Shown here: one piece after another, positions 29,205-59,290 of the stretch
How the letters are laid out: each line of letters starts with the position of its first letter
Numbering within the stretch: position 1 is the stretch's first letter
Assembly: GCA_964036045.1 (NCBI GenBank)
Contig: OZ038378.1
Coordinates: forward strand, 181,412,001-181,476,000
Length of the DNA stretch: 64,000 nucleotides
DNA from: Eutreptiella sp. 'Long Island Sound 2002'
Lineage: Eukaryota > Protista > Euglenida
Reading direction: 5' to 3'
Notes under the pieces: generated by a model
The model's database searches: none
What the model saw: the letters and a program-made list of their open reading frames with translations, nothing else
Told to the model about the DNA's origin: nothing
Program-made: the position numbers and the translations under genes

Positions 29205-32200
29205 TCATTGGCGCCACAACTTGGAGCCCTCAGCTGCGGTATCGTATCGCTTTCCGCGGAAATCGTGTCTCTCGAAGTCGATGATGTACTTCTGGTACAC
29301 GGACTTGAGCGTTTCGTTGATTCCTGTCCAGCATCGGCGAGGGCGCGCTCGGGGCGTGCGCACTTCCGCGAAGCATGATGCCACCCGTTGGGGGCGCTCG
29401 GGTGGAATCAATACAACGCTTTTCACAGTCAAGTCCGAAGCCCTTGGGCTGACACAGGGGCTTTCCCCAACACCTCCCAACAGAATACCAAATGGATATC
29501 TCATGCGGGGCTACGCACTTTTAGCACAAGCAGTCCCTCAGGTGTTGGGGCAAGAGCGGGTCAGCGACAAGGCAGATTGATCTGAGCGCTTGCTTTGGGG
29601 GCTTTGTGGAAGAGGGGATATTCACAGGGTTTTCTAGGGCGGCGTGTTCCAAAAAAAGCGTACACTGAAGGGGTGGGGTGGGGTGGGGTGGGGTGGGGTG
29701 TGCGCATCGGAGTGTTCTCATGTTGTAGCTTGTTGCACTTTCGTAAAGGAGAGATCACCGGAATCTTCATCAACCAGAGTTGTTTGCAAATCTCTTAGTG
29801 TTAAACAACATCATCTTGACGTCCGTTGGACGAGTAAAGAAGGCGTCGGATAAAGAATGGACTGATGCCCAAAACACGTAATAAAATTGGGACGGGCAGA
29901 TGTGAATCTTTATGTTCGCTCTAGCCCCACCTCCTCAACAATACGTCATCTGGCGCGGGGAACACTTCCACTGCGCACCCTCTGTGCAGGGTGCCGCTCG
30001 CTATCCGCAGGTGTGGTCATGGAAATATTAATTTTTGTCGGAGGAGAAACACCAGGAGAACGTGGTCTGGCAGGATTTTGTGGAGTCTGCAGGGGGCTCT
30101 CCATTTGGCAATTGACATCTCCACATTGAGATCTGACCATTTTGAGTTTTCATAAGTGGATTTTCCGGCGGCAGCATATTTGGGTCAAATCAAGCCAACC
30201 AAATAATTTTCGTCCACTGAGAGTAATGGGGGGAGTGACCTGACCGAAACTCGTGGGGGCATGGCTGACAAAATACAACACTACGCCAAGCACAGTACAC
30301 CATCCAGCAAACAGCAGACCGCTACATCAAGCAGACCGCAATGCATGTTGCATAAAAGGCATAGCACAGTATACCAACGACACCGTGGCGCCCCTGCCGC
30401 AACACCCCACCAAAATCGGACACGCACTCTTATTTCGACTCGTGACAGCACTCCTGTGCAAGAGGCCCCTCTGATGGCAATCTTGGCCCCAAGCGACTTT
30501 GCAAGGACTGGAAATGCACAGGGCATACGAGACTGCAATTAAAGACGGCATAGAGGCCAGATCAAAGGAAGACATGCGCAGCTTGCTCCCCAATCCGATG
30601 GCACATCATTCCCGTTGCAGACTGGAGGTCCTGGGGTTCGATACCTCGCATGGGTGCTATGCAGGGAGCTGATCAGAATATGGCACGGCACGCCAAGCTA
30701 AGCTGGGCGAGGAACAAGGCGTACCCGGGACACCCACCCAATCTTCGTTCTCTTTGCTGATAATGTCCAGCCATCGGTTCAGCATCACTGTCTCCCATCC
30801 TCCCAAATGCGTGACGACGTTGTACAAATACCTGCAGCAGAACCAGGGGCAAACAAGAGACGACGGCTTCTAGATTATGGGGCATCCCATTCCATCTCAG
30901 GCTACCCTCCTCGATAAGAGTGTGCCCCGACACATATGCACAAATTGAAGGTTCGATGGCTCCGTGTCGCGTTTTGCACAGCTCCCGGCATGGGGACCAG
31001 GAAACCCAAGTCACCACTCGGCCCGAGGAGAGCATGCGTGCAGCAATGAGCAACGAAATTTGTATGAAATGTGTTGCCCGCCAGATCCCATTCTGGGGTC
31101 TGACGTGGGCTGGAGGCTGCTCGGGGCGCGTACCACGCACACGCTGCCTGTCACCGCTCAGTTGTGATATAGCGATGCTCAATTAAACACCCCAGGCCTA
31201 CTCATAACCCACTGCTCACTGATAATGGCGGACTGGTCACGCATGACATGCGACGTGCCATTTGCCGGACAAATACCAAGCATGTCCCAATGCCGTTTGG
31301 GACCTCTTTGTGACCTCGCTCAGAGAAACCTGATGCTCCCCCGCACACCGACGATACCTGTTCGGAAAACCACTCCCTTCACAGCAATGGAGCAGGAGTT
31401 GACGTCAGGTCAGGGCCAGTCCCCAGCCCTACCCCTGACACTCTTGTGCCCGTGCGGTAGAGTGCGGCAAAGGGCCCCGCTCGTGAAAATGAAATGCTTT
31501 CACCGGAGGCCCAGCGACAGCATCCCCCCGCCTTCCGGACCGGGCCGTGCGCACCATTGCACGTGCACCCCCTCGTGTGCAGCAAGGGACACGGACATAC
31601 CACAGACTGAGGGGTTTGCCTCCCGCAAGCGGAGGGTTATGCAGAACGGACAGATCCTGTGCGAAAACAATTGCCAGTGCTCAAACGGACACAAGAGTGG
31701 TGTGTGTTTCAGAAACTGTGCAGGACGGGACCTCAGGTATGGTGTGGGACAAAGTTGGGGGCGGGCCCGTCAGTGCACCGCACCCGGGCGTGGACGTGCA
31801 ATCTTGGACCCTCCCTCTCGAAGATGCTTCCCAGGTCCAGCGTGTGCGGGCCCATCGATTGCAGGCAAATCTGCCGGGGCTCCTTTGCATTTGGGGCTGC
31901 GGGGGCATTTGGCTGCTTGCAAGGGGGGGGGTTTTCACATGCCTGGGGCAAAAAGTGGGAGGACAATTGGGGGCGGGGGGGGGGTGGGGGGCTCAAGGCA
32001 ATTTTTCGAAGCCGCCCCTTCCAGCTCGTTGGCCGCGCCAGGGGCACAATCTAGACCGACATGTCAATCAGGCCGCCTAGCGGCTATGGCAGGACATGTG
32101 GGGCAGCCCAGACGCTTGTAGGACAGCTGTGGATACAGCATTTCGCCGCAGGGGCACCCATGTCCGGACGCCAGCTCACATGAGGGGCCTATCTCCGGGG

Positions 32201-33307
32201 CACTGGCTTGTCCTCAATGTGGGGTCCGTGCTATGGGATGCCCCCCCTGTGTGACATTCCGTCTGGTTGTTGCTCCTTTACGGGGCCCTGGACAGTCACC
32301 CGTTCTTCCCTTCGCATGTTGCGTCGGGTCGCTGCTTTCGGTCGGCCGCTGCGGCCGGTGCTCTTGCTGGTGTCGTTTCCGCGTTCGCGGGGCCCAGTAG
32401 TTGGCGTGTTGGGACTGTGCTGAATGTGGCATGGTGTGCCGTTTGCGCGTCAGTGGCGCCCAATAATTGGCGTATTGTGGATGTGCTGGTTGGCACAGGT
32501 GTTGGCACAGGGTGGCACAGGTGTGCTTACAACTGCCGAAATACGCGGCCAACGAGCTATGGGAAATGGTCATCAAAAAGACAAGGAATACAGGGGAGAC
32601 AGGGTAGACAATCATCGAACACTCTGTGACAGGCGCCGAAGCCGCGGAGAAAATTCGTTCCGATCACTGAAAAGGGGGGGAGGGGGTCCAGGCGGGAGCC
32701 CCCTGCCGGAACGAAAATTAAAGCAAAACCCTGGGGGGAAGGGGGGGGGGGGGGATGGTGCTCGTCGCTCCACTCGAGGACCAATTTTTCTCATCACCCA
32801 ATGCAGCTGCACGAGGCATACTTTACTTTGGGATTTGTAGAACTTCATGATGTCGACAAAGAACTGGCTCTCGGTGCGGCACTTGGCCAACTTCGGATTC
32901 CACACGTTCATCGTGCAGTACCACTTGGACCGGCTGCCAGGCATCTTGTGGCCCCTGCAGATGTCCAGACATGTGCACCCCCTTGAGCCCCACCCTTTCT
33001 ACTGCAAGAGATCGGACCAAGACCTTTGCTTAACGTACCCTTGCACCAGACATTCGCCTCTGGGTTAGACCCACCATTTAGCAAGAGCCTGTTGCATCAT
33101 CCATCATGTTGCGTTGCGTTGCGTGGTGTTGTCTTCTGTGGTGGGGTGGGGTGTGGGGTGGCGTGGCGTGCTACACTGTGGTGCGCTGCAACGGACCAGA
33201 GAAGTCGGTGGCAACCACTGGGTCAAGCAACTGCAACTGGGCCGCATACCTCTCAATTGTGGCCCAGGATCCGCATCGATCACACCCGATCCATTCCACA
33301 CGCCTTC
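29205..33307 (-). CDS. CW-ARID module 3 (terminal); exons 33250-33307, 32822-32954, 31601-31656, 30725-30831, 29205-29323
   Basis: Spliced: VEWIGCDRCGSWATIER|GHKMPGSRSKWYCTMNVWNPKLAKCRTESQFFVDIMKFYKSQSK|DLSVLHNPPLAGGKPLSLW|YLYNVVTHLGGWETVMLNRWLDIISKENEDWVGVPG|INETLKSVYQKYIIDFERHDFRGKR...stop. Four consecutive junctions are phase-compatible and rebuild complete CW and ARID consensus patterns. Confidence 0.85.
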
Positions 33308-36300
33308 CTGAACCAGCACAGACGCGAAGCACCCAGGGCCAACAAATGACACCCGTTGCGGGTCCACTGCCCAGTGCAAACCACATGGCAGACTGTTAAC
33401 CCCTGGTGGTACTGGGGGGGGGGGTACCCCTGCCTCAGACGCAACTCTCTGGCAGTAGAGGTCGGCCGCAGGCCCCCAGAGGGGCGGCTTGCGTGCCATA
33501 AAGGCTCAGTAAATGTGCTGGTTGGTACTTCTAGTTGTATGCAGTGGTCTGAGTTTCGGAAACTAAATTGTTTACCTCACATGTGTTGCCTGCTCCAAGC
33601 CACTGGGTAAAGGCATTTCGACCAGATGAGAGTGGGACAGCTGTCCCTCTGCTCACAAATGCTGCTGCTGCCCTATGGCGCCCCTCCCATGCCGGCGCCA
33701 GCATGCTTCACACACCGTCTTTCCCAAGACAGTGAAGCTTGAAAGGTGCTCACCACCACTTGTAACACGGAGCCAGAGGGTTCCGGATCACCAAGTGTTA
33801 CCCATCAGCGGTGGGCAGCATGTCCAGGCATTTTCCCATTTTGTGGCGTAGTTCGTTGGTGTAGTGCGCCAATGGCAACGAAATGTAGACGAGGTCACAA
33901 CCCCATGACTCCTGTCAAGGGCAGACTGGAGCTACCGAAGCAGGCGAACAGGGGCGCAGCTCCTATCCTTGTGGACGGCATATGTCAGCACACGGGTTGC
34001 ACTGTGTGTGGAGGGGGACTGGATTGCCATGTGTGTGCAGGGGAGAGGGGGGTGCTAAGATGGCCTTGGTTGTCGAAGGATTTCCCCCTGTCATTGCGAC
34101 GCCCCTCAACCTGTTGCTTTCTCCCAGATCAAGCCTTTTTTTGCTGGGGGGGTGGGGGGGGGGGGGGATGAAACTCGACCCACCCACCCAGCCCCGGCCT
34201 TCTCGGGGTCCTGAAAGTGGGGATACATCAATATGGCTGCATAACCGGCCAAGACCGGCCCTGAAAAGAAGTACTAAACCACCACATGCTTAACGACTGT
34301 CCTTAACAAAACAAACCCCTCCCACTCACGGTATACCCCCGCGTGAGGGGATCAATTCTCAATGACCCACCCACCCACTCCGAACCCGCCCCATCCGCAG
34401 CACAAAAAAAAAAAAGCATTGTCCGAGATCCCCGCCTAATGCAGCTCACCTGACATTCTGGGGCTTGGGGGCCGCTGGCTGCCACCAGTGGCGGGTGCAG
34501 CGAACTTCCCCCAATTCCGCCCGCCCCCACCGCCCGCTTGTGTAGATCTCCTGGGCATTGCCTGTTGGCTCCCGGGCTTCCGGTCCTCGTCAGTAACCGC
34601 GCTGTGTCATGGGGTGTGTGGTGGGGGCGTAAACCAATTTACAGGGATTCGGTTGGCCATCAGGCTCCCACCCGGCGCCCCTGAAGAGGCAGTCCCCGAT
34701 GAAGACACCCAACTCGGGTTGGAGTGGCTGTTGGGAGGGAAAAGTTGTAAGAATGCCTAAGAACGCCTGCGTTGAGTTGCGCTCCCAATTCATGCAGCCA
34801 GCCACGCCCCGTTCCCCTCCCAGCCTACCTAAGCGCCCTGGGTGTTTTGCACTGTGTCTCCCAGCGATCCGGGTGGGGCCTCCCATAGGGGAGGGCCCCG
34901 TTGGAACAGACATCAGAAGCACACAACAACCAAGGCCCCATCACTGCAGGGCGTAGTGGGACACGCTCCTGAAGCTCATGACTGCCTAGGCCCCACCACA
35001 ACGCCCTGGTAGAACACACAGTGGAAGCACAAAACCACCTCGGCCGCACCGAACAGCCTTGGAAGCACATGACTACCGAGGCCCCAGTGGTGGAGCACAC
35101 CCTTGGGGCACATAACTACTCAAGCTCCACCACTGCACGGCCCTAGTACAACCATCACAGGAAGCTCATGACCACTCTTTGGGCCGCACTACAGGGCCCT
35201 AGTGAACAAAAAAAAAGACAATAGAGCACACAGCTGCGGTGCACAACCATTTGGGCCCATTGTAGGGCCTTTGTGGAGTTGGACCGTTAAAGTCCTAGAA
35301 TCTTTGGTTCCCATTGCTCTGCATGCCGACCCATCTGGCGCATGCCACGCCAGTGCAACGACCCTGGCCCTCTCCCTCTGAAACGGCATGTAAGACATCC
35401 ATGTGAAACGACTCACAGCAGCGAATACGGGCTCTTGAGGAGAATGGAGTTTACTGTGTGTATTGGCATATGCTTTGAACAGCATGTGCAGCAGGGGGCC
35501 ACCTGCCATGTCATCAGCCTTCATCCCCTCCCTTCTGCCTGGTAAACCGGGGGGGGGGTCCACGTCGAGGTTCCATTGGGCGGGAAGAAAATTGCTCTGC
35601 GGGGGGGGGGGGGACACGGAAGCCCATTTTCCCAACCCCCCCCCCTCCCTCCTTGGCCGCCGTGACGGGGAGGGGGGAGTTCAGGGCGGGGGTGCCCGAC
35701 CTGCCGTGCCGGGGGGGGGGGGGGGGTCAACCCAACATCGATGGCTCAAAATGATACCCACGTCGCGCTGATCATTTTGACTACTCAAATGTGGGGGGGG
35801 GGGGGGGGAATTATTGGTGGAAAAAACTTTTTCGGGCCAAATCTTGTGTTCCTGTGCCTTTGGCGCCAACATCCGTTCTTACACAAAACAAAGGGCCCGA
35901 CACGGAACCCCATTTCTCCAACCCCCCCCCCCTCCCTCCTTCGGCGGGCGTCCATGTCACCCCCCCCCCGCAGAGCAATTTTCAGGTTGCCTTGGAAATG
36001 GGCAGTGGACCTTGATGTCTGTATGCACCTGAGCGTTGTTAGGGGTTGGTACAAACGGGGTGCAGTGCCAAGTGTTTTGTATGGCCTGTGTTTTGTTGTT
36101 CGAGGTCCGTTGGGAGAGGGCGCACCTGCCATGTCATGTGCCCTCACCACCTCCCCTCGATGTGGGGGAGGGGCCCTGGGAATCATCAACCGGGTCCTTG
36201 GCTCCGGCCGGGGCTCCGGCTTTGGCTCCGGCTTTGGCTCGGGTGCTGGCACATGAGCGGTTTCGTGTGCCTTTGGGGCCTGAGCGGAGCATACAGCAAC

Positions 36301-39300
36301 GGCACTGCAGCAGCAACGTGGCGGGACATCTACATGACACACTACCGCCCAATAGCGGTCATGCGTCGGGCGCTGCATGTGAAAAGGGAGTGCGCCAGTC
36401 GCCATGGGTATCTACATGACACACGAGGGTCGGAGTGGGACCGTGGTTGGGTGGGAAGGAAATTCCACACCGGGCGGGGGGGGGAGTGCGCGACACACAG
36501 GGGCCCGCAGCTGCAAACACATGAACCTTCGGAGGCACCTCCTCCAGCGACGCGGCGGTGGATGTCCTCTTCGATGCGGCCGGGCTGGGGAGCATCCCCA
36601 GCGCTTGTCCAGCTTCCTCTTTGGCGTTTGCCCTGTCAGAGAGGCCAATGCCTGTGCGCCCACTGCAAATATCAGCACTCAGGTATCACGGTATGTGTGG
36701 GCGTGTGTATGTGTGTGTGTGTGCGCGCGCGCGCGTGTGTGTGTGCATTTGTGTGCGCCCCTGTACATATTTGTGTGCACGTGCGTGTGTGTGTGTGCGC
36801 GCGCGCGTGTCCGGGCATGCATGTGCATGTGTGTGTGCGCGTATGTATGCGTGCATGTGCCACAGGGAAGGTGGATGGGGCTTGGGACCTGATGCTGAAC
36901 CTTCGGTCTAAGTGCAGCCCTATTTTTTATGGCCCCCCTCCGGACCGGAGACGTCACCGCCGGCGTGCTCAGCGGCGATCAGTCCAGGGTGGCTCTTGTG
37001 TGACGTGCATGCGAGGGAGCCGGCAGCGAGCAGGGCGTACAAGTTCCTCGATGACGCAGACGCCATCTGTTTGGACGTTCAGCGCCTCTGCCGTAGCCCG
37101 GACCTCGTGGGCGGTGGGAGGTTAGCCGCGGGTGAAATCGCATTTTGGCCGTCAGGGATTGGTGGTCTTCGCCGGCGGTCCCGAACTTCCCATAACAACA
37201 AGAAAAAGATAAGGCTGTGCATTGAGGAACGCCCTGCTCCACACAGTCCTTCCACATGTGCCGGATACTACGATCCAAGTTCAGATGGGCGCATTGCCTC
37301 TCGCAGACCTATGCGCGCGTGCGCGTGTATCTCCCTCCCCCCGCTATCTCCCTCCACCTCCACCCGCCGCTTGAGAGCGAAAGTGACCGGGACCAACACC
37401 GAATGTGATAGACGGAGAGGGAGAGAGGGAGAGAGAGGGAACGAAAGAGAGGAAGAGAAAGTGTGTTTGCAAGCGCGCACGCACGCACGCACGCAGGCAC
37501 GCACCGGGGAGAGCCCAGGGAAAGCCAGTGCCAAAAAAACAGACGGAAGGTATAGGGTGCAATACTACACACTCCATTTGCCCTGTGGCAGCCTGGCTAG
37601 TAACCCCCACACCTCTTGGCCACTCTCGGTGACGTCCGCAGGGTCACAGTCGGCACTTTTTGAGATTCCGCACCGTCGGCTGTCGATGGGGCAGTGGGCG
37701 CCTGCGACGAGTGGGGAGGCTCGGGAATGAAGTGGAAAGCCCGGCACGGCAACGGCGCAAGCGTCAGGATTCGCAGAGCCGAAGCGGTGAGAGGGTCGCA
37801 GCACGGGCAGGATACGGAGGCAGCCTCCGCAGTGGGTTCCGGAAGAAAGAAGGAGCCCGGCCTGAGGGCCAGGGAAGGGGGATTGCTCCGAAATCGGATA
37901 CCACGCTCGACGTGAATTGCGAAGGCCCGGAGGGGGGGGGGGGGGGGGTGCGCCGGGGGGTCGCCGGCTCCGTGGGTGACGCATGGTCTCCCACCCCCTT
38001 TACCTCCAGACAGTGGACTCAGGGCGGATGACGTGTCGCCACGCCACTGCCCGTGGCCTGCAGCCCATGGGGCGCTCTGAGCCTAGCGCCCGGGACTCGC
38101 TGCGCACCCCGCCCCCACGTCACATACCCGGGGGTGTCTAAGAGTATTGTGCGGAGGTTTGGGTCTTTTGGGGTGTTTCAGGACGCAAATCCTGTTTTTT
38201 GTTTCACTGATATGAAGGGGGGGTGGGGGTCCGGGTATAGAGAGGGGGGGGGGGGGGTCCAAGTGTAAAGGGGAGTGAAGTGGAGGGGTGTCACGTGGTG
38301 CAAATCCTCAGTTGGAAAGAGGACAGGCAACCACATCAAACAGCGACCAAAAAGAAGGAGGGCCAACCTGCCCCTGGGCGGCGTTCGCAGGCCGTATGAA
38401 CGGCGATGGAGGAACGGCACGGTGGCATAGTGAAGGGCAACAAATACCGGGAACATCAGTCTGCAACACCCACCCCCCCCGCCCAGCCCGGCAGGAGCCG
38501 CGAGAAAGCCCTGGAGGACGACCGAGGCCCTCGCGGTCGTGCAACACCGCGTGCCCGGGGGGCAGGATGCCAGTCGCACCGTGCGCACCCCGTCCCACTC
38601 TGCAATACACGGGCACCAGGACCTCCCTGTAGAAGAAAAATGTCAGCCGCCGACCCAGGGGGCAAGACATGGCCCGGGTTGCGCAAAAGTTTTCAAGGGG
38701 GGAATTTCAGCACCAATCTGAAAAACGAAATGTCCCCCGCCGAAGTCACCCCCGTATCTCATCAGTCCGTCGGCCTCCTGACCACTCTTGACCCCCTGTG
38801 TGACATTCTGACGGGTTGCTGTGGACATTCACCCGTTCTTCCCTTCACATGCTGCGTCGGATCGCTGCGTTTTGTCGGCTGCTGCGGCCTGTGTTCCTGC
38901 TGATGTCGTTTCCACGTTCGCCCAGTCGTTGCTGTACCGGGGCTGTGCTGGTTGCGGAGGGTGCCGTTTTTGCGTTAGCGGTGCCCAGTAGTTGGTGTAC
39001 CGGGGTTGTGCTGGTTGCTGCGGGGGTCGTTTGACTGTTTTCGCTGCCCACACACCTCCGCTCTGCGGTTGTCCTTCACCTGCCTTCCCACGTTTCCGTG
39101 TGCGTGAGGCCCAGGTGCCCCACTCCTCCCCGCGCCTTTCCGGCCGTCCACCCCCTGCGCTCCACCACTCCGTGGGTCGCGCGTGCGCATGACGCGTTCC
39201 TTGATGGCCGCAGGTAGCGTGTGCTTCGCGGGTGGCGTGCGCTCCGTTAAGGTTGACGCGGGTGGCGTGGGCGCCTGCGTGGTGTCCCGGGTGATTTACG

Positions 39301-42300: not shown

Positions 42301-42823
42301 TCAAATGGCAGCAGATATGACTTGTAAATCTGTTCCCAATGCCTGGCAATGTCCTTGAGCTGCTGCCACGGGGGCTGAGCAACCGCCATCGGAAACCACC
42401 TGCGGGGCACGGGCGCATGCGGTGTGTGCTGAGTGCGCTGTGCCGCGTGGTCGGGCTTGGAATGTGTCACCAACTTCAAGATCAATCGGCCTCGACAGGT
42501 TTCCAATACCCTTCCCTCTATCCCCAATGAGAGACCACGCCTCTTCCGACAGTCGATGGACCGGAGCGCTGCGTATGCCGAAGGTCGCAACCGCAGGTAA
42601 CCCAAGCTTGTGACTGGGCGTAAGTGAACACCAATTAGAAAGATCCATTACTATCGCCATTATCAGTAATGGTATTAGCAGCAGCAGCAACAGCAGCAGT
42701 ACCCCCATCAGCAGCGTCACCACCGCCACCACCACCACCACCACCACCACCACCACCACCACCACCATCTTCTTCGTGTTCAACGACAACAACAACAACA
42801 GACAATGACAACAACAACAACAA

Positions 42824-42854
<31 letters not shown>

Positions 42855-45800
42855 AACAACAACACCAACAACGTCGCTGCGTCTCGCTGCTGAGGTGCTG
42901 TTGTGCTGTTGTTGTCGTGCTGCTATTGTTACTATTTGCACATTATCACTCTGTCAGTCACATCACCCGTGGCAATGACGTGCTACTTGTGAGTGCAATG
43001 TTTCGAATGTGCAATCACGACGCCCATTATGGTGTGGTGCACGATAATATTATGAGTATTACCCTCATCACCACTGCAGGGTCCGCAACAGCCTACAATC
43101 GTCTACAGGGATCTACAGGGGTCTATACTGGTCAGGGAGGGTCTCAATGATAAAGCAGCATTTTTGGGGCAGGGGTTAGAAGGATGGACTTGGGCGCAAC
43201 AACTGCACGCTTTCTTGACACACAGTGGCACATCCAAGCCCCGGGCGAACTCCCCATACCTGCTGGAGGACACAGTTTCCAAGCCCCCAAGCTGCACCAC
43301 CATGTTGTACAGCCCCCAAAGGTTCACGGCCACAGAGTCGGCCATGACAGGCAGCTGGACGTCAATGTTGTGATGCCCCCAGCAGACCTTCAGCTGGGCG
43401 TAGAAATCAGCTTCTGCAAAGGATTGAAAGCCAACAACCGATGCCGCCCAAGGATCCCAGGAGGATCATCCTTGAATACAGCAGCAAAATGCATACGCCT
43501 CGTGAATACCTCCTGTGTGTCTGGTGTAGGTCTTGTGGACACCACCTTCATGCCTCATGTGCACCTCCTCTTTGCGTCCTGCATGCCTCCTGCATGCCTC
43601 CTGCACGCCTGCTGTGCAGGGGAAACAGAAATGCTCGTCACCACGGCTGTTGACGGATTGACAGAGTGGTCAAGAAAATTTTTGATTTATTCCATTTTCA
43701 CCGTTTCTGGCTTGTTTTGTGTTTTTTGGCTCCAAAGATGATGCCAAACGCTCATTTTATGCTTTGAGGTAACATGGGGGGGGGGGGGGGGGGGCTAGGC
43801 TTCACATTAACACTGTTTGATTGGCAGGAAACTGTCTTAATTCGAGGCGTAGCACTACTGCTGCCCCTGCCCCTGCCTCCACGGCGGTTCCTGCGCTCAC
43901 TCAGCTTGCCCCTGTCCATGCCCCTGAGCCACTGTGCCTGCCCCACTGCACTAGCCCCTGCCCTGTCCCCTGTCCCCAAGCTCTTCCCCTACCCCTTTCC
44001 CGCCCCCCTGCCCCTGCATGTGCCTGTGCCCGCATGACCAATAATAGCTGCCACTCACCAGTGCTGTCGCTGTTTCGCCGTCCAGGGTTGCCTACCTGCC
44101 GCACAGGGCTGCGCGTGATGAGCTACCATTGCCATTCATAGCTGGACACGAGGCATATAGAGGCATACAGGAGGCACACAAGAGGCACGCAGGAGGATGC
44201 AGGAGCAGTGAAAGCCTACTCACCGGACACACTACTCGTCGATTGGAAAAACTCACCGTTTCCCATTCAGTTTGCCTCGTTTTGGGGGTGTTTTCTCTTT
44301 TTTGTGTGTGTGTTTTCTTTAATGTAATCGTGCAGTACATTCTTCGTATTTTTCTTTTGCAAATGCCACGTTTTTACGAAATTTGTATGCTTTCCTGCAA
44401 TTTGTTTTGTGCACGTCATCGATCTGAAGAAGTCCGGCATGTCTGCCCCCCCCCCTCGGTGCAGGGTTTCGATCCATCAGGTTAATGAACTGCTTGCTGC
44501 AGTGACCCCATGCATCCGCCTTTTCCTTTCTTCGCCCATGCGGGGGAGGGGGGGCGTACAGAATGGAGAGGCAAAAGCCATGAATACCTGACATGCAGAC
44601 CGCAATGCCTGGGTTCCATTCATTCATTGCACATGTCCATGGGGTTGTCACTGAGCACCCTCTCTCTACTGACGCCCACTGCAAGCAGCGGGTGCATTGC
44701 ACCCACTGCACCCCAGGGCCAGCGGGGATGTGGTCGTCAAGGGAATCCACCGGGGAAGAGGTGGAGGGTGTATGCGAATTGGGCGGAGCTGAGGTTCCTG
44801 CGAGCGCGTGCAGAGCGGCCTGGGCATAGTCTGATGGTCGACGCCACAGGAAGTTGAAAGCAGAGCAGCACAACACAACACAACGCAACGCAACGCAACA
44901 CAACGCAACGCAACACAACACAACACAACACAACACAACACAACACAACACAACACAACACAACACAACACAACACAACACAGCGGTTGCCGTTCCACCA
45001 GCGGTACGTGAGAGTCAACGGACGCCCTTTGGCGGCTGGCTGCCATTTCTAGTCCAGAAGCGAGTGCAGCAAAGCGGAGGGGGGCTCATTACATCCAACG
45101 CAACACTTCCGCAAGCTTCCAACAATATAACCGCATTGCTTGCAAGAACTGTCAGGCCAGACATGTGCGGCCAGCAGATAAACATGTGAAACCTGCGGGA
45201 GACTGACCTTGTAAAAAGAAAAACAGCGGCTACCGAAAGTTTCAGGAACCGGTTGACCCGGAGAGCGCAACTTCGGCACGTTAGAGGATGGACGTGGGAA
45301 GGAGGGCGAGAGACAGGAGAGCAGAGGTGTGTGGGGCGGGGGGGGGGGGCGTCAGAGGCACAGAGCGGACATGGGCGGGGGAAGAGGAGGGAGGGGGGGA
45401 GTAGATAGTACAGGCGCCCCCCCCCCCAATTTGCCAATTTGTGGGTTAGTCAAACCGAAGCTGACTCATGCAGGCGCCGATGCTGCTTCCGCCTGCCGAC
45501 CGATGGGCAACACCATTGAATTGCACTTCGTAATTGGCACCATTACCCCAACATCCCGCACTGCAGTCTCTCCCCACCCCTCACCTTGGAGGGTGCCCTC
45601 CGCCCGCCCCCGCCTTCCCCTCCCCCTCCCCTTCCTGCACCCTAATCCAACAGACCTCCGTCGGTGGGCGGCTGCGGTAGGGAAGCCTGCACACAAGGCT
45701 CAGGGGGCAGGGCCGCTGCGGACACGTCGTCCACCCGTCCAGGCGGGCGTGCAGGAATCCTCCATAACTGCATCTTGTCTGCAAAAAGGAACAGCAGTGG

Positions 45801-48800
45801 CAAACGCCGAACTCATCATAAACAAGAGGGCGCTCCCCAAATACAAATAAAAGAAGAGGAAAGTGGGTGACCATACAATCCGTCATATTCGGGCGGTCAC
45901 CGACGGCGGGTCATGTGGCACGCAGCACCATTTTCATGTCGACATACATTATGCAACGGCCCGCACCACGCGTCCGAGTGGCCGTGGGAGGCGCCGATTC
46001 CAATGGAAAGGCAAACACACGCCCGTACCCATGTCAACTCACACACATATTCGTTTGACACGATCATTGTGTCGTTCAAACCCAAAACACACACCAAAAT
46101 CATGTACACAAGAGACCAAACCACCAGGACATTGCTCTTCACTCGGAACTACACGGATACCACTGGCAGTTGGCCAGCTGCCCCCCCCCCCCCCCCCCCC
46201 ACACACACGATCGACGCGAGACGAACAGGCAATACGAAACACAGCACTGCGTGCCAAACGAATCTCGTACGCAAAGGAAAGCACATCTCACGAAAGCCTT
46301 CATGCTGCATGGGTCTGCGCCACACCACGAGAAAGCACCCCGTTGTGCACGGAGCATATGGTCCGGCGAGGTGCTTTTCTGAGGTACAGCAGGCGCACGG
46401 TGAATATATGCTCACAAGGCGAGGGGCAGTCTACTGGAAGGGGCCACCCCCGAGGTCAAGAAGACGTTGTGCAGTACAGGGACCGTCCGTCAGCTCAGAA
46501 AACAGGCCGCCAGGTGATAGGCTGGTACCAGTATGACCGTGTTCGCCCCACGGTGCTTTCAGTGCCCCAAGACACCGGTTGCTTGCCGTCCCCCAGAAGG
46601 TTGATTCTTAAACCGGGAAACCCCGCATACCACACACGCGAGCGCACACAGGCCTGTTCCTTTCCCACTGGGGGATACTGGAGCCTAGGAAAGTGTGGAG
46701 GTACACTTATGTGAGCAGGAAATATGACTGAAAAAAGTACACAAACTTTCTTAAAAGAAAAAATCGCACGCGGTCCTTTACGATAGGCGTGATTTACTTC
46801 TTCAAATGGTCCTCAGGGCCCTGCTGCAGAGCAATGCCATCCACAGCCAACCGGTGCATTGGCGGCACGGAGCGGTGGGAACTGGTGTGACTGGAGTATA
46901 GAGCGCACCGTGTCCGAAGCCTGTGATTGACAGTGTACAGAGCTTTGGGATGGAAATGCCACAGGGGTAGGCACCAGTGCCGCCAAAGTGCTGCTTGGGT
47001 TTGGATGAGACATTGTACTGCCTCGCAGCATTCGGAAAAACGTCTAAACATCCGGCAAACAAACGCTCAAACTACCGGGCCAGGGGTTGTTCCGCGGAAA
47101 TTTTTCCGCAAATTAGCCCCTGGCAACGTGATTTGCAGGAACTTTGGGTTTGCGTGCACAGACCTGAAAGAAGAGAGTAACACTTGCCACGGAAATGCTC
47201 TTCCTCGAAAAAGAGTATGTACTCAACGTACACCTGAAATGCCGAGACGCTGATGGGAGAAGCGGACGTGCACGTTTGCACAAGGAGCAGTCTGCGGTAG
47301 CAGGAAACTGTCGCAAACACCCTAGCCAACAGTGCAACCGTAAACACATCAGTCATCGGCGGTAGTCTGCAACACACGCCTCCATACATTTTGGACGCCA
47401 TGGACGTGGCACAACGCTTTGACAAATGTGTGCGGCGCCTCATCTTCAACAGCATCGAGAGACACCCCCGTGGGAGGGTAGAATGACAAAAAGCCGGGCG
47501 GTTGCAAAACGGTTGGAGGGCGGTTGGGGACGGATTGGAAGCGGTAGGAGCGGGAAGGGCTCTTAGAGATGAAGGAATAAGGGGCGTACGTCACCCCCTT
47601 CAAGCACAGGCCTGTATTTGGCTCATTGCCCCCCATGTGGTGCCGCGCGCACTGTGATATACAGTCGGTCTCGATGAGGCTGCGCGCGGGGGGGCAGACG
47701 AGGCAGTGCGGTCACCAGGTCTTCCTACGGACTTTTGCTTCCGCTTTCGGCAAGAGACGAGGAGGAAGCGATTTGTTGCAATCGTGCCCATGCACAGACA
47801 GGGACCAGCCTGGTGCTCAGCAAGAGGTCAGGGTCAGAGCTGGTTCCGAACGGCCAACCCCCCCTATTTCTGTTTGGATCGGCGATATCTATGCCACCCT
47901 CTGTCAGCCCCTATGTTTATGCCATTCCCCCGTCCTTATGTCACCCCCCAATATCACTGCAATTCCACTATAATTATGTCAGTCTCCGATTTATATCACA
48001 GCCATACCGATGTCATCCCCCACATTCATGGCGCCCCCCAATTTGTCTCCAAGTGCCCCCAAGAGAAAGAGGCACACAGATCAGTTATGTCACTCCCCTG
48101 TGGGCCAGCAGCACCGAAGCAGTGAAGACATGTGCATCCCCCAGGGATCCGAGCCGAGGAACACCAACTCTTTGGAACCAAAAAACTATGCCAGCTCGCG
48201 TACGTGGCCTTGCGCAACAAAGAAGTAATATCCGACATTGGCTGCATGACGGAGATGCTGAAAGCATGTCCGCGGGCGTCTCAACTAAAAGCACGTCACC
48301 CCGCACGACATCGCGTCTCTGCTTCACATCATCTACGCTCCCACACCTCCTGCACCACGGCCCACCTCCCCCTCCTCGTCCCCTCTGCCCTCCCTATGCC
48401 TTCTTGGCTGTGTCTCCACATTCGGACGCCCCCTCCCCAGGGAGTAGCGCCACACCCGGAACGATGTTGTCACCCGGAGAGATATGAGTAGCGGGTCACA
48501 GGACCAAAGGCAGAATCCGAGTTGGAGTCAGACTTTGAATGAAGGTCCCTGTCAATTGAGCCCCTTTGCCAAACCCCCAGTTTTCGGGGCCTCTCGTGAC
48601 CCCTTCCCCCCAAAGACTGCAGCCCCCACTTCCCAAGGGGAACACACAGCAACACACACCTGCTGGATCCACTCGTGGATATCGCACGACGCCATCCACG
48701 ACTGCCTCTTGCCAAAACTACACAGAACGCCCACCCACTCGTTGGCCCACACGGTGCTCCACCCCCCCAACTGCGTCACGAGGTTATATAAATGCCAGAA

Positions 48801-51800
48801 AGGCACAGACACGTCCAATATTGTTGCAGACGTCGGGACCTGCGGATGAATGCGGCGAGATATGAGCCCCAGCTCAAACGCTGGCCCTCGTCTGAGCCCA
48901 CGCTCTGGCCCCTGCCCAAACCACAGCCCTGACTGTCGTGGCCGCCCAAAATCCGATACCTTGCCCCCACGGGCAGTGCTTCGCGCTGAGGGATCCACCA
49001 GGTCTCCGGGTCAGTACCTCACGTGCGCGTGTATGGGAATGTTGTCGTTTGCAGTGCGCCGTGCGAGGACGGTTTTGACGCATGTGATCGCTTTGAGGGA
49101 GGTGGTGCGCGGTGAAGATTGTTCGTCGGGTCTCTCTCATGCGTTTTGTGCCGTGGAAGCCCTGACCGGTTTGGCTCTGTGCCTCTGTGCCCCAGTGCCT
49201 CAGTGCCCCGGTGCCTGCGTGGCCTTGCTTGTCTCTGCATAACGTAATGTCTGCATTCGGTTGTACGCCGCGTACAAAACGTAACCCGCGTTGTGGAAAT
49301 GAATTCTCACGTCATGTGGCACGGAGGTGTACAGGGACATGTGTGTGGGGCTGGAGCAGTCACACTGCATACCTTGTCCACATGCGAGGGCCGCTGCAGC
49401 CGCCACAAATCGCGATACATCGCATCGAAGCGGTCTTGGGGGAGGCAGCGCGCCATGTTGGGGTTCCAGGAATTCATACTGCACCTGATGCGGCAGCACA
49501 CAGTCCCTCAATCCATTGAGTCTGCACAGCATTGCCCAAAGCGCTGCAAGTCCTACCGATGGCCCCGTTGCACTGATTACTTCGAGGTACATCTGTTGGG
49601 TCCAAACACGGGGGGGGCGGGGGGGCGATCGAGCCATGCCTGCCAGGTGCCCACGTCGTGTGGGCCTTTCAAAAAGGAATGGGGGTGGAGTGCTGTGTCC
49701 ACGCACCGGCTCTGCGGGGCCGCCGGGCCCTCGTGATGGCGGATGTTCAATCCACACCTCCTGGGAGCTTGAGGCGAAAGCGGGTCATTTCTTGGCAGCC
49801 AGAGAGCCTTGGGTGCATAGAAAGTGGGGATTGGGGGGGGCTTCAAAGTAGATACACCCAACAGGAACGCCATGCCACAAAAAAAATACTTAATGTAACC
49901 TCTTAAAATGCGCGTTTTCTGTCCTCAACCCACCGCTTGTGGCTGTTGTTGAGACTTGCAGTTCCGATTGTTGTTCTGAGTTGTGATACCGTGGTGCGCC
50001 CCATAGGGGCATTCCCCTTGCGTTGTTTGTTTTGCGTAATGGGTACCCATATCATGGCCAACGCTGCTCATGTTGCTCTGGTGCTCATGAGAAAGAGGTT
50101 TTTAGCATGAACAACACCATATGGCTTCCCCACAAACTTCAAAAGTAGCGTGGTGGAACTGTTTCACCGGTGAGACAAGGGTGCACGGGATATGCATGTG
50201 AACGGTGTCGGCATCAGCAACGCCAACTCCATCACCTTCGCCATTGCCATCTCCCTCATCGCCAGTACGAGCCCAGACCCATCCCCAACAACCTCCCCAC
50301 CATTGTCGCCATCAGCACCGCCTACAACAGCCCTGCCAAGCACCCAACCAACAATCCAGCCACCAGCCCGGCCACCAACCCAGAAGCCAACACAAGGAGT
50401 GCATTTCGACCCATAAATGGTGACCATCTGCTTCTTGGATTCTTGTTCAGCAGGGCATCATTTGTTGCAGCAGGCAGAATTTTTTCAGTCAAAATATCAG
50501 ACATCACACCTTCAGAACGAAATATGGCATTACCTTTGGATTGCAAACACTTGCAAAATTGCAACTTCAAGCCCCTACCCCGCCCCCCCTATTCCTTGCG
50601 ATCACAGCCCATGTCCCTGAGTACCACGGCAACACGGGGTGAACGTTCTTGCACACGGCCGCCAGTACACATGCACATGAAAGGGGTGCATGTCGGATAG
50701 AATGGCTCCCAATTACATTGAAACGTATAAAACTGGCTTGGAGTCCAAAGCACAACATGCCCCAGCCCCTCTTTCCGTGTCTTTCCACACACAACGCGCT
50801 CACGTTCCTTTGACCTTACGTCCTGATCCATCAGCGGTCCCAAACGTGACGACGTCCCACTTGGACAAGTGTGTGCTTGTGGAAAGGGTGTCATGGTGTC
50901 AAGTCTCGGAGCTGGGTCCACCAGTGTACCGGATACGGCTGCCCCCAGCCGAGTGGGGCAAGGTGGCACTATGCCACAGCAAATGCTGGCAGTGCCGTGC
51001 CTTGCCCCTCTCAATCGGCCCATGGAGGAGGGGGGCTGTTCAAATATGGACGCCCAACTGTGTTGAAGAACTTTTGGGGGTCCGGAGCAGGAGGGGGGGT
51101 CTGTTGGAGGGGGTGGGGGGTGGGAGGGCGCCCAGGGGAAGTGGGGGGGCTTCCCCGGGGGGCATGTGGGGGGGGGGGGGGGGATCAAGCACCTCCGAAG
51201 AGTTGGGTATGTGGCCCAGGTGGCCCGACTCACGCACCGTCCCTAACCAAAAGGATTCGGTAGCATCAACTTGGATATTTCCGTCAATACAGGAGACCTC
51301 AGGGAGAGGTGTCCCGAGGCGGTCATGGGGTGAGGTGCGCACAGTGTACGCGTTATCGGCTTGTGAGAGGCTCACCACCATGTTACGATGGGCAGTACCG
51401 CTCAGATGCAATGGAATGCTGACATCAGTGACATTGCGAAGTGTAGTGCCACATTGACAAGCATACTCAGTGCGCAACACTGCTTCACTTTCTTGGAAGG
51501 CATGAGAAAGAGTATATGAGCAGGCGCAATGAAAAAAAAAAAGCAGAGGCAGAAGAACAGGTGAGGACATGTGTTAAGTGCCACCTGCGGAGGGGTGTGG
51601 GGGTGGGGGTTGGAAGTGGGGGGGGGGGGATGTTTAAACTAGGCAAATGCTGCATGCTCCTGACATCCGTGGTGTATTCTGAGCATTTTGAGTGTACACA
51701 CGTGGGGTGGAAAAACAGTTTTACCCCATGTTGTAGGTAGAAGGGAAAAAAATCCGGCGCCTGCAGCGCTATCAGTTCGCCGCAAATCTCAAGTGGCCGA

Positions 51801-52139
51801 AAGCCGGATTCGAAAGCTTTGGGGGGTCCGGAAGGGGAAGGGCGTGGGTTGGGTGCAGGTTCTGAACCAAGGGGGTCCCCCTTGGATCGGGCCCTGCAGT
51901 AACCAGGCCGGTTGGTGGGGGGGGGGGGGGGTCAAAACATATGATCCTGAACAAAGTACAACAGACACAAGCACCCTCACATTCTGATGGCCCAGCACCT
52001 CCACTCCTCAAGCGACGGCGGTAGTCGATGGCCATGCTCGACTGTGGTCCACTGCAAACACTCGTCGCACTGGATCCAAAGCAGTTCGCTGGACTGAAGG
52101 ATTGTGGGGTCAAGTTGAGCCTGGGATTCACTGGCATCG
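29205..52139 (-). CDS. Multi-exon gene encoding three tandem zf-CW + ARID modules (putative chromatin reader); 5' end and linker exons unresolved
   Basis: Twelve exons assembled by hand, all with GT-AG boundaries and matching phases within modules (see the three module entries). Single-gene continuity is inferred from a donor site after module 2 and a stop codon required only after module 3. Confidence 0.75.
29670..29700 (+). repeat. (GGGGT)n microsatellite, potential G-quadruplex
   Basis: gggtggggtggggtggggtggggtggggtg seen directly. Confidence 0.85.
32241..32510 (+). mobile_element. Dispersed repeat family (non-autonomous element), copy A
   Basis: Homologous to 38791-39030 (cccctgtgtgacatt...acccgttcttcccttc.catg.tgcgtcgg); internal ~63-bp duplication starting cccag/cccaa. 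Confidence 0.7.
33802..37110 (-). CDS. Candidate linker exons of the CW-ARID gene (33802-33911, 35417-35502, ~36530-36645, ~37045-37110)
   Basis: Short open frames with AG/GT boundaries (e.g. GCT|gtgagt at 35416; ESWGCDLVYISLPLAHYTNELRHK); no domain support and the phase chain could not be closed. Confidence 0.3.
36700..36860. repeat. (GT)n/(GC)n compound dinucleotide microsatellite
   Basis: Alternating gtgtgt and gcgcgc tracts seen directly. Confidence 0.85.
38791..39030 (+). mobile_element. Dispersed repeat family, copy B (may continue to about 40400)
   Basis: Aligns with 32241-32510 in the same orientation and carries the same internal duplication. Confidence 0.7.
39646..39755 (+). repeat. 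About 20-bp G-rich tandem repeat CACTGGGTTG(n) x5
   Basis: cactgggttggggggggggg repeated five times with variable G-run length. Confidence 0.9.
42284..44830 (-). CDS. CW-ARID module 2; exons 44588-44830, 43260-43413, 42284-42399
   Basis: Spliced: WVQCTRCLQWASVERGCSVTTPWTCAMNEWNPGIAVCMS|EADFYAQLKVCWGHHNIDVQLPVMADSVAVNLWGLYNMVVQLGGLETVSSSR|WFPMAVAQPPWQQLKDIARHWEQIYKSYLLPFEQ; phases 1/1 and 2/2 match. Confidence 0.85.
42675..42875. repeat. Compound trinucleotide microsatellite (CAG)/(CAC)n/(CAA)n in the intron splitting ARID 2
   Basis: Runs of accacc and aacaac seen directly between exons 43260-43413 and 42284-42399. Confidence 0.9.
44866..44981. repeat. (CAACA)n pentamer microsatellite
   Basis: About 23 units of caaca/caacg, ending roughly 35 nt before the CW2 acceptor on the minus strand. 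Confidence 0.92.
46852..47017 (-). CDS. Candidate linker exon after ARID 1
   Basis: Phase-2 acceptor matches the end of exon 47184-47233; S/P/T-rich open frame; the donor gttggc is weak. Confidence 0.4.
47184..52139 (-). CDS. CW-ARID module 1; exons 51999-52139, 49373-49484, 48660-48839, 47184-47233
   Basis: Spliced: LLWIQCDECLQWTTVEHGHRLPPSLEEWR|CSMNSWNPNMARCLPQDRFDAMYRDLWRLQRPSHVDK|VPTSATILDVSVPFWHLYNLVTQLGGWSTVWANEWVGVLCSFGKRQSWMASCDIHEWIQQ|VYVEYILFFEEEHFRGK; all junctions are GT-AG and in phase. Confidence 0.85.
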
Positions 52140-58073: not shown

Positions 58074-58699
58074 TGATGACTTTCCCAAATTGAGTCCCCG
58101 AGTTTACCATTACTGTATGAAACCCTCGAGTAGACCAACAGTTGCCTCTTGCCTACCAAATGAAGCAACAAACCATCCATGCACAACATTGAACAAACTG
58201 CCACAAACTGCTATATCCTCCGGATGGATGGGATCGTAGTCTGGGACCGGTAGCCGTGTGGCCATTTTGGCGAGCAAGTCCACCTCCCCATTGCGCTGGA
58301 TTTGCTCACGTTCCTATGCACTGCGGGCCTCGGACTCTTGACGGTGATTGGGGATCTACTCCATGATGACTCGCTTGCGTTGCGTCTGATCACACGACTT
58401 GTGGCGGACGTCGGAATAAGAGCACTCCCGCGTGGGTCGTTTGTCGGCACATTTGGTCACGGCCATGTTGTCGATGTACTGCTTGTCGTTGGATGCTATC
58501 GCCGTCCAAGGACGTGCCTTCAGGCTGCCTTTGATTGTACTAACCCCTTCAAATGCACCAGTGGGGGAATGTTTGCCCGGCGCGCGCCCGGCGCGCTACT
58601 TTTAGACTATGTTCCCCCCGAAGAGCCCCCAAGCACACCCCTTGGAAACGCCCTTAGAATTAGGTGACCCAAACTGCCCCAGCTCAAGAAAGTTGCCAA

Positions 58700-58850
58700 C
58701 TGGGGTACACAGTACCACTCTCGCTCCTTTAAGGGCGATCTTGGTCAACACCTTAGCAAGTTGGGAGAATGGGGGGTTAGGATAGCACAACCGCATCGAT
58801 CTCCAGTAGAAGCGATAGGCGTTATTGAGGTATCGCGAACAGTAGAGCTG
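58700..58850 (-). pseudogene. N6-adenine methyltransferase-like fragment (NPPF motif) of the type carried by DIRS-like retroelements
   Basis: YCSRYLNNAYRFYWRSMRLCYPNPPFSQLAKVLTKIALKGARVVLCTP resembles the DIRS Dam-like pattern (DAF..W....Y.FPPF..I.+VL.KI....VILV.P); motif recall only. Confidence 0.6.
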
Positions 58851-58989
58851 CATCATAACATTGGTCCCACAAGTGTGGGTGTCAATACATGCAGTACAAT
58901 AGTGCTCCTTACACTCATCACAAACTGCGACGGTGGAGCGCTTCTGGCAACACAACACACACACTTCTGCCTCATCCTCTGCCTCATCT

Positions 58990-59290
58990 TGCGTGCCACA
59001 ACCGAGCAAACGGCTGCTCAATGTGTGCCCTATACCACCCGTGCACGTCATTGTAACATTGTTGGCGGGCTGTCAAAGCGCCATTCTTTCTTCCAATGAA
59101 TGGCACAATGACATGAATCCGGCCCTTATAAGCACCATCATGGCCCCCAACTTCGAAATCAAAGAAATCACCTCGGGTACGAGAAGGTCCATACCCATCC
59201 CAAATCAAGACATCTGCTGATGTCCCGGGGGCCAAGGGGCAAATCCATATAATGTTGCCCAACATATCAACGGCAACAGTCCACCGGTAG
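58990..59290 (-). mobile_element. PIF/Harbinger/ISL2EU-type (DDE_Tnp_4-like) transposase fragment, 5'-truncated
   Basis: AVDMLGNIIWICPLAPGTSADVLIW...GHDGAYKG...IVPF...LTARQQCYNDVHGWYRAHIEQPFARL follows the PG(S/T)xxD, DxxY, PF, YN and RxxIE motif order; the first catalytic Asp region is absent. Confidence 0.75.

Follow-up and report, generated by a model that had tools for sequence, protein, structure and literature searches.

The CW-type zinc finger (zf-CW) and the ARID domain are both textbook domains, and several described chromatin proteins resemble the combination of the two analysed here. In Arabidopsis ARID5, an ARID is likewise joined directly to a small zinc-finger reader of the histone tail (ARID-PHD; PDB 6LQF, with H3K4me3 peptide and DNA bound), and one such cassette can take DNA together with an H3K4-methylated tail. 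ARID5 differs in having one cassette with the PHD after the ARID, whereas the gene in the window, the 64,000-nt stretch of DNA that was analysed, has CW before ARID in three cassettes. The zf-CW of the MORC3/ZCWPW1 type shares with the window the pattern W..C..C..W...W.C..N...C, with its four Cys and the pair of cage Trp positions, but a single CW is paired there with an ATPase or a PWWP domain, while that of the window is fused to ARID three times over. ARID4A/RBBP1 (PWWP-ARID) and KDM5 (JmjN-ARID-PHD) also hold an ARID and histone-mark readers in one chain; they differ in reader types and in domain order, and each is a large protein, multi-domain or enzymatic, with a single ARID.

Reader–ARID cassettes are, accordingly, already known (ARID5 ARID-PHD, ARID4 PWWP-ARID), while the direct tandem CW-ARID fusion was unmatched in the papers and structures searched. 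The view of the initial annotation that (CW-ARID)x3 is absent from model organisms is borne out to this extent: a literature search on fused CW-ARID yielded no paper, a Foldseek search of the PDB with a relative's cassette returned no solved structure covering both domains, and no Atlas cluster matched the entire cassette by shape.

The locus belongs to Eutreptiella sp. 'Long Island Sound 2002', a euglenid alga, and comprises 12 exons on the minus strand, from 52139 to 29205, with the following features:

Exon 1: 51999..52139 (-), N-terminal half of CW 1 (W..C..C..W); Pfam zf-CW positions 2-18, 18.9 bits; tblastn matches from P0002, P0005, P0007 and P0009.
Exon 2: 49373..49484 (-), C-terminal half of CW 1 (C..N.WNP..A.C) and first ARID helix; Pfam zf-CW 12.0 bits, tblastn, family profile.
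Exon 3: 48660..48839 (-), core of ARID 1 (LYNLVTQLGGW...); Pfam ARID 19.5 bits, tblastn, family profile.
Exon 4: 47164..47233 (-), C-terminus of ARID 1 (Y..YIL.FE..HFRGK.Y), donor phase 1; tblastn, family profile.
Exon 5: 44588..44797 (-), Ser/Pro-rich linker of ~30 aa and entire CW 2; Pfam zf-CW 28.5 bits; Atlas feature matches are zf-CW clusters; alignable to MORC3 CW chains.
Exon 6: 43260..43413 (-), N-terminal half of ARID 2 up to the GG turn; Pfam ARID 29.1 bits, tblastn, family profile.
Exon 7: 42284..42399 (-), C-terminal half of ARID 2 (Y.SYLLPFEQTYHK), donor phase 1; tblastn, family profile.
Intron between cassettes 2 and 3: 33308..42283 (-), 8,976 nt, GC-rich.
Exon 8: 33250..33307 (-), end of ARID 2 (G-R-R) followed with zero linker by the N-terminal half of CW 3; tblastn.
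Exon 9: 32822..32954 (-), C-terminal half of CW 3 and first ARID helix; Pfam zf-CW positions 24-44, 23.1 bits.
Exon 10: 31601..31656 (-), micro-exon of 56 nt, loop of ARID 3 (...GGKPLSL + TG); continuous family-profile alignment.
Exon 11: 30734..30831 (-), core of ARID 3 (YLYNVVTHLGGWETV...); Pfam ARID 16.1 bits, tblastn, family profile.
Exon 12: 29205..29323 (-), C-terminus of ARID 3, complete family tail (FRGKRY...KLWRQ), TGA stop at 29207-29205; tblastn, family profile.

All 12 exons could be rebuilt from the sequence. Each is preceded by AG and followed by GT, and the phases match at 11 of 11 junctions, so that splicing in phase, as proposed in the initial annotation, is confirmed at this level. 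The 1,480 nt of exon sequence contain zero stops and zero frameshifts, and 22 of 22 internal splice sites are intact. Two split codons restore conserved residues, namely the Trp of 'LW.LYN' (exons 10 and 11) and the Gly of 'F.G.RY' (exons 7 and 8). The number of 12 exons stands, but they are distributed over the three units as 4, 3 and 5 instead of 4 apiece. The earlier layout is also loosened at its 5' end: use of the acceptor at 52139 is not required, since the frame remains open upstream of exon 1 to an ATG at 52172-52170, which is itself preceded by a (GA)n(GT)n tract. The reading frame is 481 aa long from 52139 and 492 aa long if started at the in-frame ATG 52172.

In a tblastn comparison of eight relatives with the 64 kb, the 12 exons were matched with agreeing borders, and the remaining matches were few and weak (E 0.03-0.9, <28 bits). 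Exon 10 ranked top among all AG..GT open frames of its 2-kb intron (39 versus 26 for the next other candidate); variants of this exon with the same acceptor scored 35-41. The 8,976-nt intron is 3.6 times as long as the next longest, the other introns being of 295-2,514 nt. No nested gene was recognisable in it, and Pfam was blank on its four longest ORFs.

A family profile was built solely from cassettes of relatives (mostly transcript contigs), with the window sequence excluded. The spliced model scored 448 bits against this profile and matched it as three full-length cassettes, unbroken across exon junctions. Cassettes 1, 2 and 3 scored 158, 133 and 170 bits and covered positions 2-146, 5-142 and 5-154, respectively, of 169. 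Both the three zf-CW + ARID units recognised earlier and the (CW-ARID)x3 layout with near-zero spacing from CW to ARID are thus upheld. The linker between cassettes 1 and 2 measures ~30 aa. There is none between cassettes 2 and 3, the former ending at residue 330 and the latter beginning at residue 331.

Pfam was run on ten single exons, namely exons 1-7, 9, 11 and 12. The gathering cut-offs of 27.5 bits for zf-CW (PF07496) and 24.1 bits for ARID/BRIGHT (PF01388) were exceeded by exon 5 (28.5 bits) and exon 6 (29.1 bits), respectively. Six of the other eight scanned exons match the correct halves of the zf-CW/ARID profiles. Exons 4, 7 and 12 gave no CW or ARID match in these single-exon scans. 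For the split fingers of cassettes 1 and 3, three of four halves (those in exons 1, 2 and 9) match the corresponding halves of the zf-CW profile.

The four Zn-binding Cys (C-x2-C ... C ... C; alignment columns 9, 12, 33, and 45) are present in each cassette. Counted over the three cassettes, 12 of 12 Zn cysteines and 6 of 6 cage tryptophans are retained, together with the W.Q strand residues. Aligned to MORC3 (WVQC...C..W), exon 5 has W at both cage positions, and the alignment places W likewise in cassettes 1 and 3; the claim that both cage Trp are kept in all three units is therefore correct. The family-conserved positions kept in cassettes 1, 2 and 3 number 36, 32 and 36 of 43, leaving 11 altered in cassette 2. 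Identity is 30–55% in the few exon stretches that match, and all three units have long tree branches, cassettes 1 and 2 among them. Retention of conserved residues despite such identity and branch lengths does not fit a long-dead copy. The family C-terminal tail (L-W or L-F after F.G.RY) occurs in cassette 3 only (...KLWRQ).

Judged by its sequence, the window gene is genuine and intact, and it codes for a member of a euglenid protein family with fused zf-CW and ARID. The fused cassette is not peculiar to this locus: euglenid relatives encode 1, 2 or 4 of them. P0002 has four cassettes on one intron-free 3.7-kb contig, which is most likely RNA-derived, and its ortholog lies collinear in the assembly from which the window comes. 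P0003 has two cassettes on a contig with a spliced-leader tail. One cassette followed by PWWP (CW-ARID-PWWP) is found in P0017 (EG_transcript_6165) and in P0009 from Euglena longa; P0011 combines a single cassette with a chromo domain. Pfam scores of the relatives reach 67 bits over four fingers for zf-CW and 50–173 bits for ARID. The window protein shares the fused cassette with this family at 37–42% identity, with motifs in common from end to end. It differs in having three cassettes, neither PWWP nor chromo domain, two cassettes without the tail, and linkers of 0 and about 30 aa versus 60–130 aa. No ortholog of the window protein was found within the family.

The AlphaFold model of one cassette of a relative (P0002:803-962; not the window protein) reached pLDDT 91.3 and pTM 0.86, and the relative's cassette is predicted to fold as a single compact module. 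In Foldseek comparisons, this cassette matched the MORC3 CW with TM 0.65–0.69 by target and rmsd of about 1.8–2.3 A, and the ARIDs of JARID1D, RBP2 and ARID3A with TM 0.65–0.73 by target. ARID matches bearing on the ARID4A/RBBP1 and KDM5 comparison occupied ranks 2, 5, 15 and 16. The ARID part of ARID5 was matched both by fold (rank 13) and by sequence.

The best overall explanation, which we hold with modest confidence, is an intact gene of the euglenid family whose one mRNA would encode a three-cassette reader of H3K4me and DNA. Each cassette would be a rigid reader with two lobes: the CW lobe would grip the N-terminal tail of H3, with two tryptophans predicted to cage methylated K4, and the adjoining ARID lobe is predicted to contact DNA. 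Three serial cassettes would act as a chromatin binder that is multivalent and non-enzymatic, with a preference for sites that bring several H3K4-methylated tails and DNA into close proximity. In MORC3, the lysine is caged by W410 and W419, and the CW strands are where H3 normally pairs (PMC10612106). Euglena H3 shows one difference from human H3.1 in the first 40 residues, and H3K4me3 has been detected in Euglena (PMC2939574). The description of chromatin in this lineage as poorly characterised is only half right as regards the ligand; on the readers of euglenids, no paper was found. The ligand specificity of the cassettes and any bridging of several nucleosomes are predictions.

The CW lobes may, alternatively, not read H3K4me; their ligand may be unmodified H3 or something else, or they may act as a zinc brace that shapes a composite DNA-binding ARID module. 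Of the 11 relatives' cassettes compared, five (from four of nine proteins) carry R, M, S or A in place of the second cage Trp, namely unit 2 of P0002, both units of P0003, P0010 and P0011, although the rest of the cassette is conserved; methyl-lysine reading is thus no constant feature of the cassette. In the relative's model, CW and ARID are packed as one body, to judge from the pTM of 0.86, and the C-terminal W-R-R forms a strand that could pair with nothing but the two CW strands, so that it could self-occupy the CW groove. PDB titles, moreover, list MORC3 CW with unmodified H3 besides H3K4me1 and H3K4me3. We nevertheless consider this alternative unlikely, since three of three window cassettes retain the W.Q strand residues along with the pair of cage tryptophans, two of these lack the tail, and the H3K4me3 ligand is present in Euglena.

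As regards the transcript, the window gene, which we presume to be expressed, most likely gives a single 12-exon mRNA encoding about 492 aa with no additional domain. We infer one transcript because the splice phases fit, cassette 2 has no start codon, and relatives are multi-cassette. Both inter-cassette junctions (47164|44797 and 42284|33307) keep the phase, and their donors and acceptors conform to the consensus. In the frame of exon 5, no ATG occurs from the upstream stop (45014) to CW 2. The missing tails of cassettes 1 and 2 count against one mRNA, as 9 of the 11 relatives' cassettes have the '...LW' tail (ending L-W or L-F).

Separate products, two or three in number, are the second alternative: cassettes 1 and 2 would share one mRNA, while cassette 3 would be a gene of its own, started at ATG 33386; spliced-leader trans-splicing would separate the products, and the locus would be a tandem paralog cluster. 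This ATG lies in frame, 26 codons upstream of CW 3, and would serve if the acceptor of exon 8 went unused. The 8,976 nt that precede cassette 3, far longer than any other intron, point the same way, as do the stop reached 20 codons after read-through of the exon 7 donor and the stop reached by read-through of exon 4. Searches for RNA joining the units, in RNA runs and in a transcript collection, gave none. Three small candidate RNA runs gave no reads over 42900-48899, and among the sequence sets listed as containing the locus none is recorded as RNA. Exact patterns of exons 6 and 12 were absent from a collection that contains the spliced transcript of a same-organism paralog, a collection without positive control. 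On the other side stand the consensus sites and matching phase at both inter-unit junctions, the shared strand of the three units, which have no recognisable gene between them, and relatives with two and four cassettes on single transcripts; cassette 2, having no start of its own, must at least be joined to cassette 1. We regard separate products as quite unlikely. The long branches of cassettes 1 and 2, the 9-kb intron and the possible ATG of cassette 3 itself weaken the one-mRNA reading.

A single-cassette paralog from the same organism is represented by a transcript assembled in full length, including the spliced leader. No transcript-derived protein was found for the window gene, the exhaustive search with exon 3 giving solely the genomic ORF in unspliced form, with 100% identity, nor did that search reveal a close ortholog in other euglenid transcriptomes. 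A silent or recently retired copy, intact in sequence but with expression lost or decay under way, would agree with these results on three routes, with the long branches of cassettes 1 and 2, and with the altered positions and two missing tails; it is highly improbable given the intact 1,480-nt frame, splice sites, Zn cysteines and cage tryptophans, the ancient divergence of the cassettes, over most of which selection must have held the frame open, and low or conditional expression or thin RNA sampling as possible reasons for the missing transcript.

If the gene is expressed and active, the single three-cassette reader would be a compact natural case of multivalent reading of histone tails and DNA and, if true, an entry point into euglenid chromatin. 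The family members, which have 1, 2, 3 or 4 cassettes and may or may not keep cage Trp and tail, make up a natural series for effects of valency and tail on binding. A more specific version, which we hold very doubtful, is a compact euglenid array that would grip three H3K4-methylated tails and DNA at once and bridge or clamp neighbouring nucleosomes; here, a rigid cassette would have been arrayed one to four times, and the L-W tail would be a pseudo-ligand of the CW groove, kept only in the last cassette. Among named Atlas clusters, ARID+PHD came closest to the cassette, but only at 0.77. ARID, PWWP and zf-CW occur together in a mollusc Atlas cluster.

The gene region has a G+C content of ~57% and the window is eukaryotic DNA. 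Three W..C..C..W motifs occur on the minus strand, at ~52.1, 44.7 and 33.3 kb. Three-frame translation of this strand, combined with scoring of candidate micro-exons, resulted in a model of 12 exons (E1–E12; 52139 to 29205). These exons form three cassettes, each a zf-CW finger fused to an ARID, which comprise four (E1–E4), three (E5–E7) and five (E8–E12) exons, respectively. AG precedes all 12 exons and is followed by G in 10 of these acceptors; GT follows every internal exon, mostly as GT[AG]TG. The phases match at all 11 junctions of the assembled 12-exon model. The introns are 295 to 2,514 nt long, with the single exception of one of 8,976 nt. The open frame of 481 codons runs from 52138 to a TGA at 29207–29205. 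Upstream of the acceptor at 52139 it is still open to an ATG at 52172, directly 3' of a (GA)n(GT)n tract; a protein start at this ATG is therefore possible and would yield 492 amino acids. The acceptor at 52139 is probably not the 5' end (a spliced-leader site), because a spliced leader there would make the first ATG out-of-frame. The codon split between E10 and E11 restores the conserved Trp of 'LW.LYN'. That between E7 and E8 restores the conserved Gly of 'F.G.RY' and is non-discriminating, since read-through also encodes Gly.

Domain identity was examined with single exons and a local profile rather than with the whole spliced protein. E5 alone matched Pfam zf-CW with 28.5 bits (cut-off 27.5), and E6 alone matched ARID with 29.1 bits (cut-off 24.1). 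Six of the eight other scanned exons matched the correct halves of these two profiles; no CW or ARID match was obtained for E4, E7 and E12 in the single-exon Pfam scan, which covered all exons but E8 and E10. In tblastn searches, eight relatives matched the 12 exons, with borders at the predicted splice sites. Elsewhere in the 64 kb only a few weak stray matches appeared (E 0.03–0.9); these aside, tblastn with all relatives revealed no fourth cassette, PWWP or chromo domain at the locus. The spliced model scored 448 bits against a profile made solely of relatives' cassettes, with three end-to-end matches (158, 133 and 170 bits) and no gap at intra-cassette junctions. The initial annotation, in which 12 exons splice in phase into three CW + ARID units, is confirmed by splice sites, phases, Pfam, tblastn and the 448-bit profile. 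Of the domain-profile checks, Pfam placed both E5 and E6 above cut-off and the family profile gave three full cassette matches.

The family was assembled from an exhaustive search with E3, from Pfam and from two word-index searches.

Relatives carrying CW-ARID cassettes (protein handle, architecture, source)
P0017, P0009, P0007: CW-ARID-PWWP, one cassette; EukProt (E. gracilis, E. longa), JGI
P0011: cassette + chromo (Pfam: ARID, chromo; CW by motif); JGI
P0010: cassette + PWWP (Pfam: ARID, PWWP; CW by motif); JGI
P0003: two cassettes; 2.2-kb JGI contig with 5' start TTTTTTTTCG
P0002: four cassettes; single intron-free 3.7-kb Logan contig

A collinear ortholog of the four-cassette P0002, with 43–71% identity (mostly >50%), is present in the window's own assembly (L006, contig ctg9883, 9751–19627). 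It contains tandem cassettes and introns of 1–3 kb, and only the first two cassettes lie within the fetched 20 kb. Multi-cassette mRNAs are therefore established for the family by the transcripts P0002 and P0003 together with this collinear genomic ortholog. Two further open reading frames were found in ENA assembly ERZ25074135. One, P0001, is an unspliced ORF around E3, whose locus is 100% identical to window positions 47552–49998. The other, P0005, is a CW-ARID ORF. Its orthologs P0017 (Euglena gracilis) and P0009 (E. longa) are only 76% identical to it; unless these are paralogs, the window thus probably comes from another euglenid species. JGI contig L005 (sample 3300042018), with the 5' start TTTTTTTCG, is a five-exon spliced copy of the P0005 locus at 100% identity, so RNA of the window's organism is present in the JGI collection. 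The tails TTTTTTTTCG and TTTTTTTCG on relatives' contigs point to a euglenid origin.

The best identity of the window cassettes to any relative is 37–42%. A tree intended to pair them, either among themselves or with cassettes of relatives, has long branches and gave no resolved pairing. Two features distinguish the window protein. Its linkers are very short, with cassette 2 ending at residue 330 and cassette 3 starting at 331. A '...L-W/F' tail after F.G.RY is present in 9 of 11 relatives' cassettes and absent from cassettes 1 and 2 of the window. CW and ARID are known domains, and the joining of an ARID to a histone reader is also a known principle. No CW-ARID fusion or tandem array was found in the literature searched. 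The earlier remark that a (CW-ARID)x3 architecture is not known from model organisms agrees with the searched literature and PDB; the cassette itself recurs one, two and four times in euglenid proteins. An Atlas mollusc cluster combines ARID, PWWP and zf-CW (score 0.86; domain order unspecified), and the CW/ARID combination may also occur outside euglenids.

Structure prediction, proposed in the same annotation, was run on a relative's cassette, P0002:803–962, with the family alignment; both a CW-like and an ARID-like part were matched. In this model (mean pLDDT 91.3, pTM 0.86) CW and ARID are predicted to form a single compact body, not two beads. Foldseek aligned the N-terminal part to the CW of MORC3 (TM by target 0.65–0.69) and the remainder to the ARIDs of JARID1D, RBP2, ARID3A and Dead ringer; it also listed 6LQF (ARID5 ARID-PHD, bound to H3K4me3 and DNA) and the ARID4A PWWP-ARID. 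Among solved structures, none that spans both CW and ARID was retrieved by Foldseek from the PDB, and no Atlas cluster covered the whole cassette by shape. Residues P0002:958–960 (W-R-R), in the conserved C-terminal L-W tail, are modelled as a beta strand (model m7701d6bbf57f), for which the two CW hairpin strands are the sole possible partners. The tail strand may occupy the histone-tail site of the CW.

Alignment of E5 to MORC3 chains placed its two tryptophans on 'WVQC' and 'C..W'. W410 and W419 of MORC3 cage the lysine (PMC10612106). Their equivalents are kept in all three window cassettes, as had been noted from the sequence. The second cage position is R, M, S or A in five relatives' cassettes, so not every family member can be expected to read methyl-lysine. 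That the CW of the window gene does not read methyl-lysine is rather unlikely. The H3K4me ligand is available in Euglena: within the first 40 residues its H3 has a single difference from human H3.1, and an antibody detected H3K4me3 (PMC2939574). Domain identity and the retained residues suggest that the gene product is most likely a non-enzymatic, multivalent chromatin binder, which would bind a K4-methylated H3 tail with each CW and DNA with each ARID.

Cassettes 1 and 2 are very probably joined in one mRNA. In the frame of E5, no ATG occurs from the preceding stop to the CW finger. Cassette 2 therefore depends on a coding exon further 5', which indirectly supports one mRNA over separate products from the locus. 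The same is true of both inter-cassette junctions, which are in phase and have splice sites like those of the other junctions, of the long introns, which contain no recognisable gene (the five longest ORFs tested there had no Pfam match), and of the relatives with two and four cassettes per mRNA. Inclusion of all three cassettes in one mRNA is likely, with less confidence than for the first two. Separate products, an unlikely arrangement, are favoured by the 9-kb intron before cassette 3, which far exceeds the other introns, and by the ATG at 33386, which is in frame for cassette 3 and could be its independent start.

A single search for sequencing runs returned three DNA runs containing the sequence, along with three very small ones from 2013 that share hardly any of its words; the latter gave no contig for window positions 42900–48899. 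Neither the exhaustive E3 search nor the E5 and P0009 cassette-region queries retrieved a transcript-derived protein that contains exons of the window gene. Among transcript-derived proteins, E5 gave no candidate and P0003 gave three matches, with candidates dominated by low-complexity words; the P0009 cassette region retrieved single-cassette orthologs only. Exact patterns of E6 and E12 were absent from the JGI metagenome/metatranscriptome collection, a weak negative without a positive control. A dinoflagellate origin was rejected, as the window lacks the spliced leader of that group; it also lacks that of Euglena, which is uninformative. A silent copy of the gene is the least probable reading; the three cassettes keep 36, 32 and 36 of 43 family-conserved positions (cassettes 1, 2 and 3) and all zinc cysteines.

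Several repeats and mobile-element remnants were also recorded in the window.
1334–3449 (minus): internal duplication, 1365–2236 versus 2249–3441, 73–100% protein-level identity
32240–32502 and 38773–39060: one repeat element shared by two introns of the gene, 54–82% translated identity
44855–44989 and 46172–46215: short tandem repeats within the intron that immediately precedes E5, treated as repeats in read mapping; the former translates as (VLCC)n
58608–59298 (minus): PIF/Harbinger-type transposase remnant upstream of the gene (Pfam DDE_Tnp_4, 29.5 bits)
60031–60171: second transposase copy, ~70% protein identity, 1 kb beyond the remnant

The summed contig depth in the DNA run reached 6548, 565, 487 and 304 at 48500–48699, 43700–43899, 47500–47699 and 45300–45499, respectively, i.e. 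7 to 150 times the ~40x background. This points to high-copy intronic repeats in these four stretches, one of which adjoins E3.
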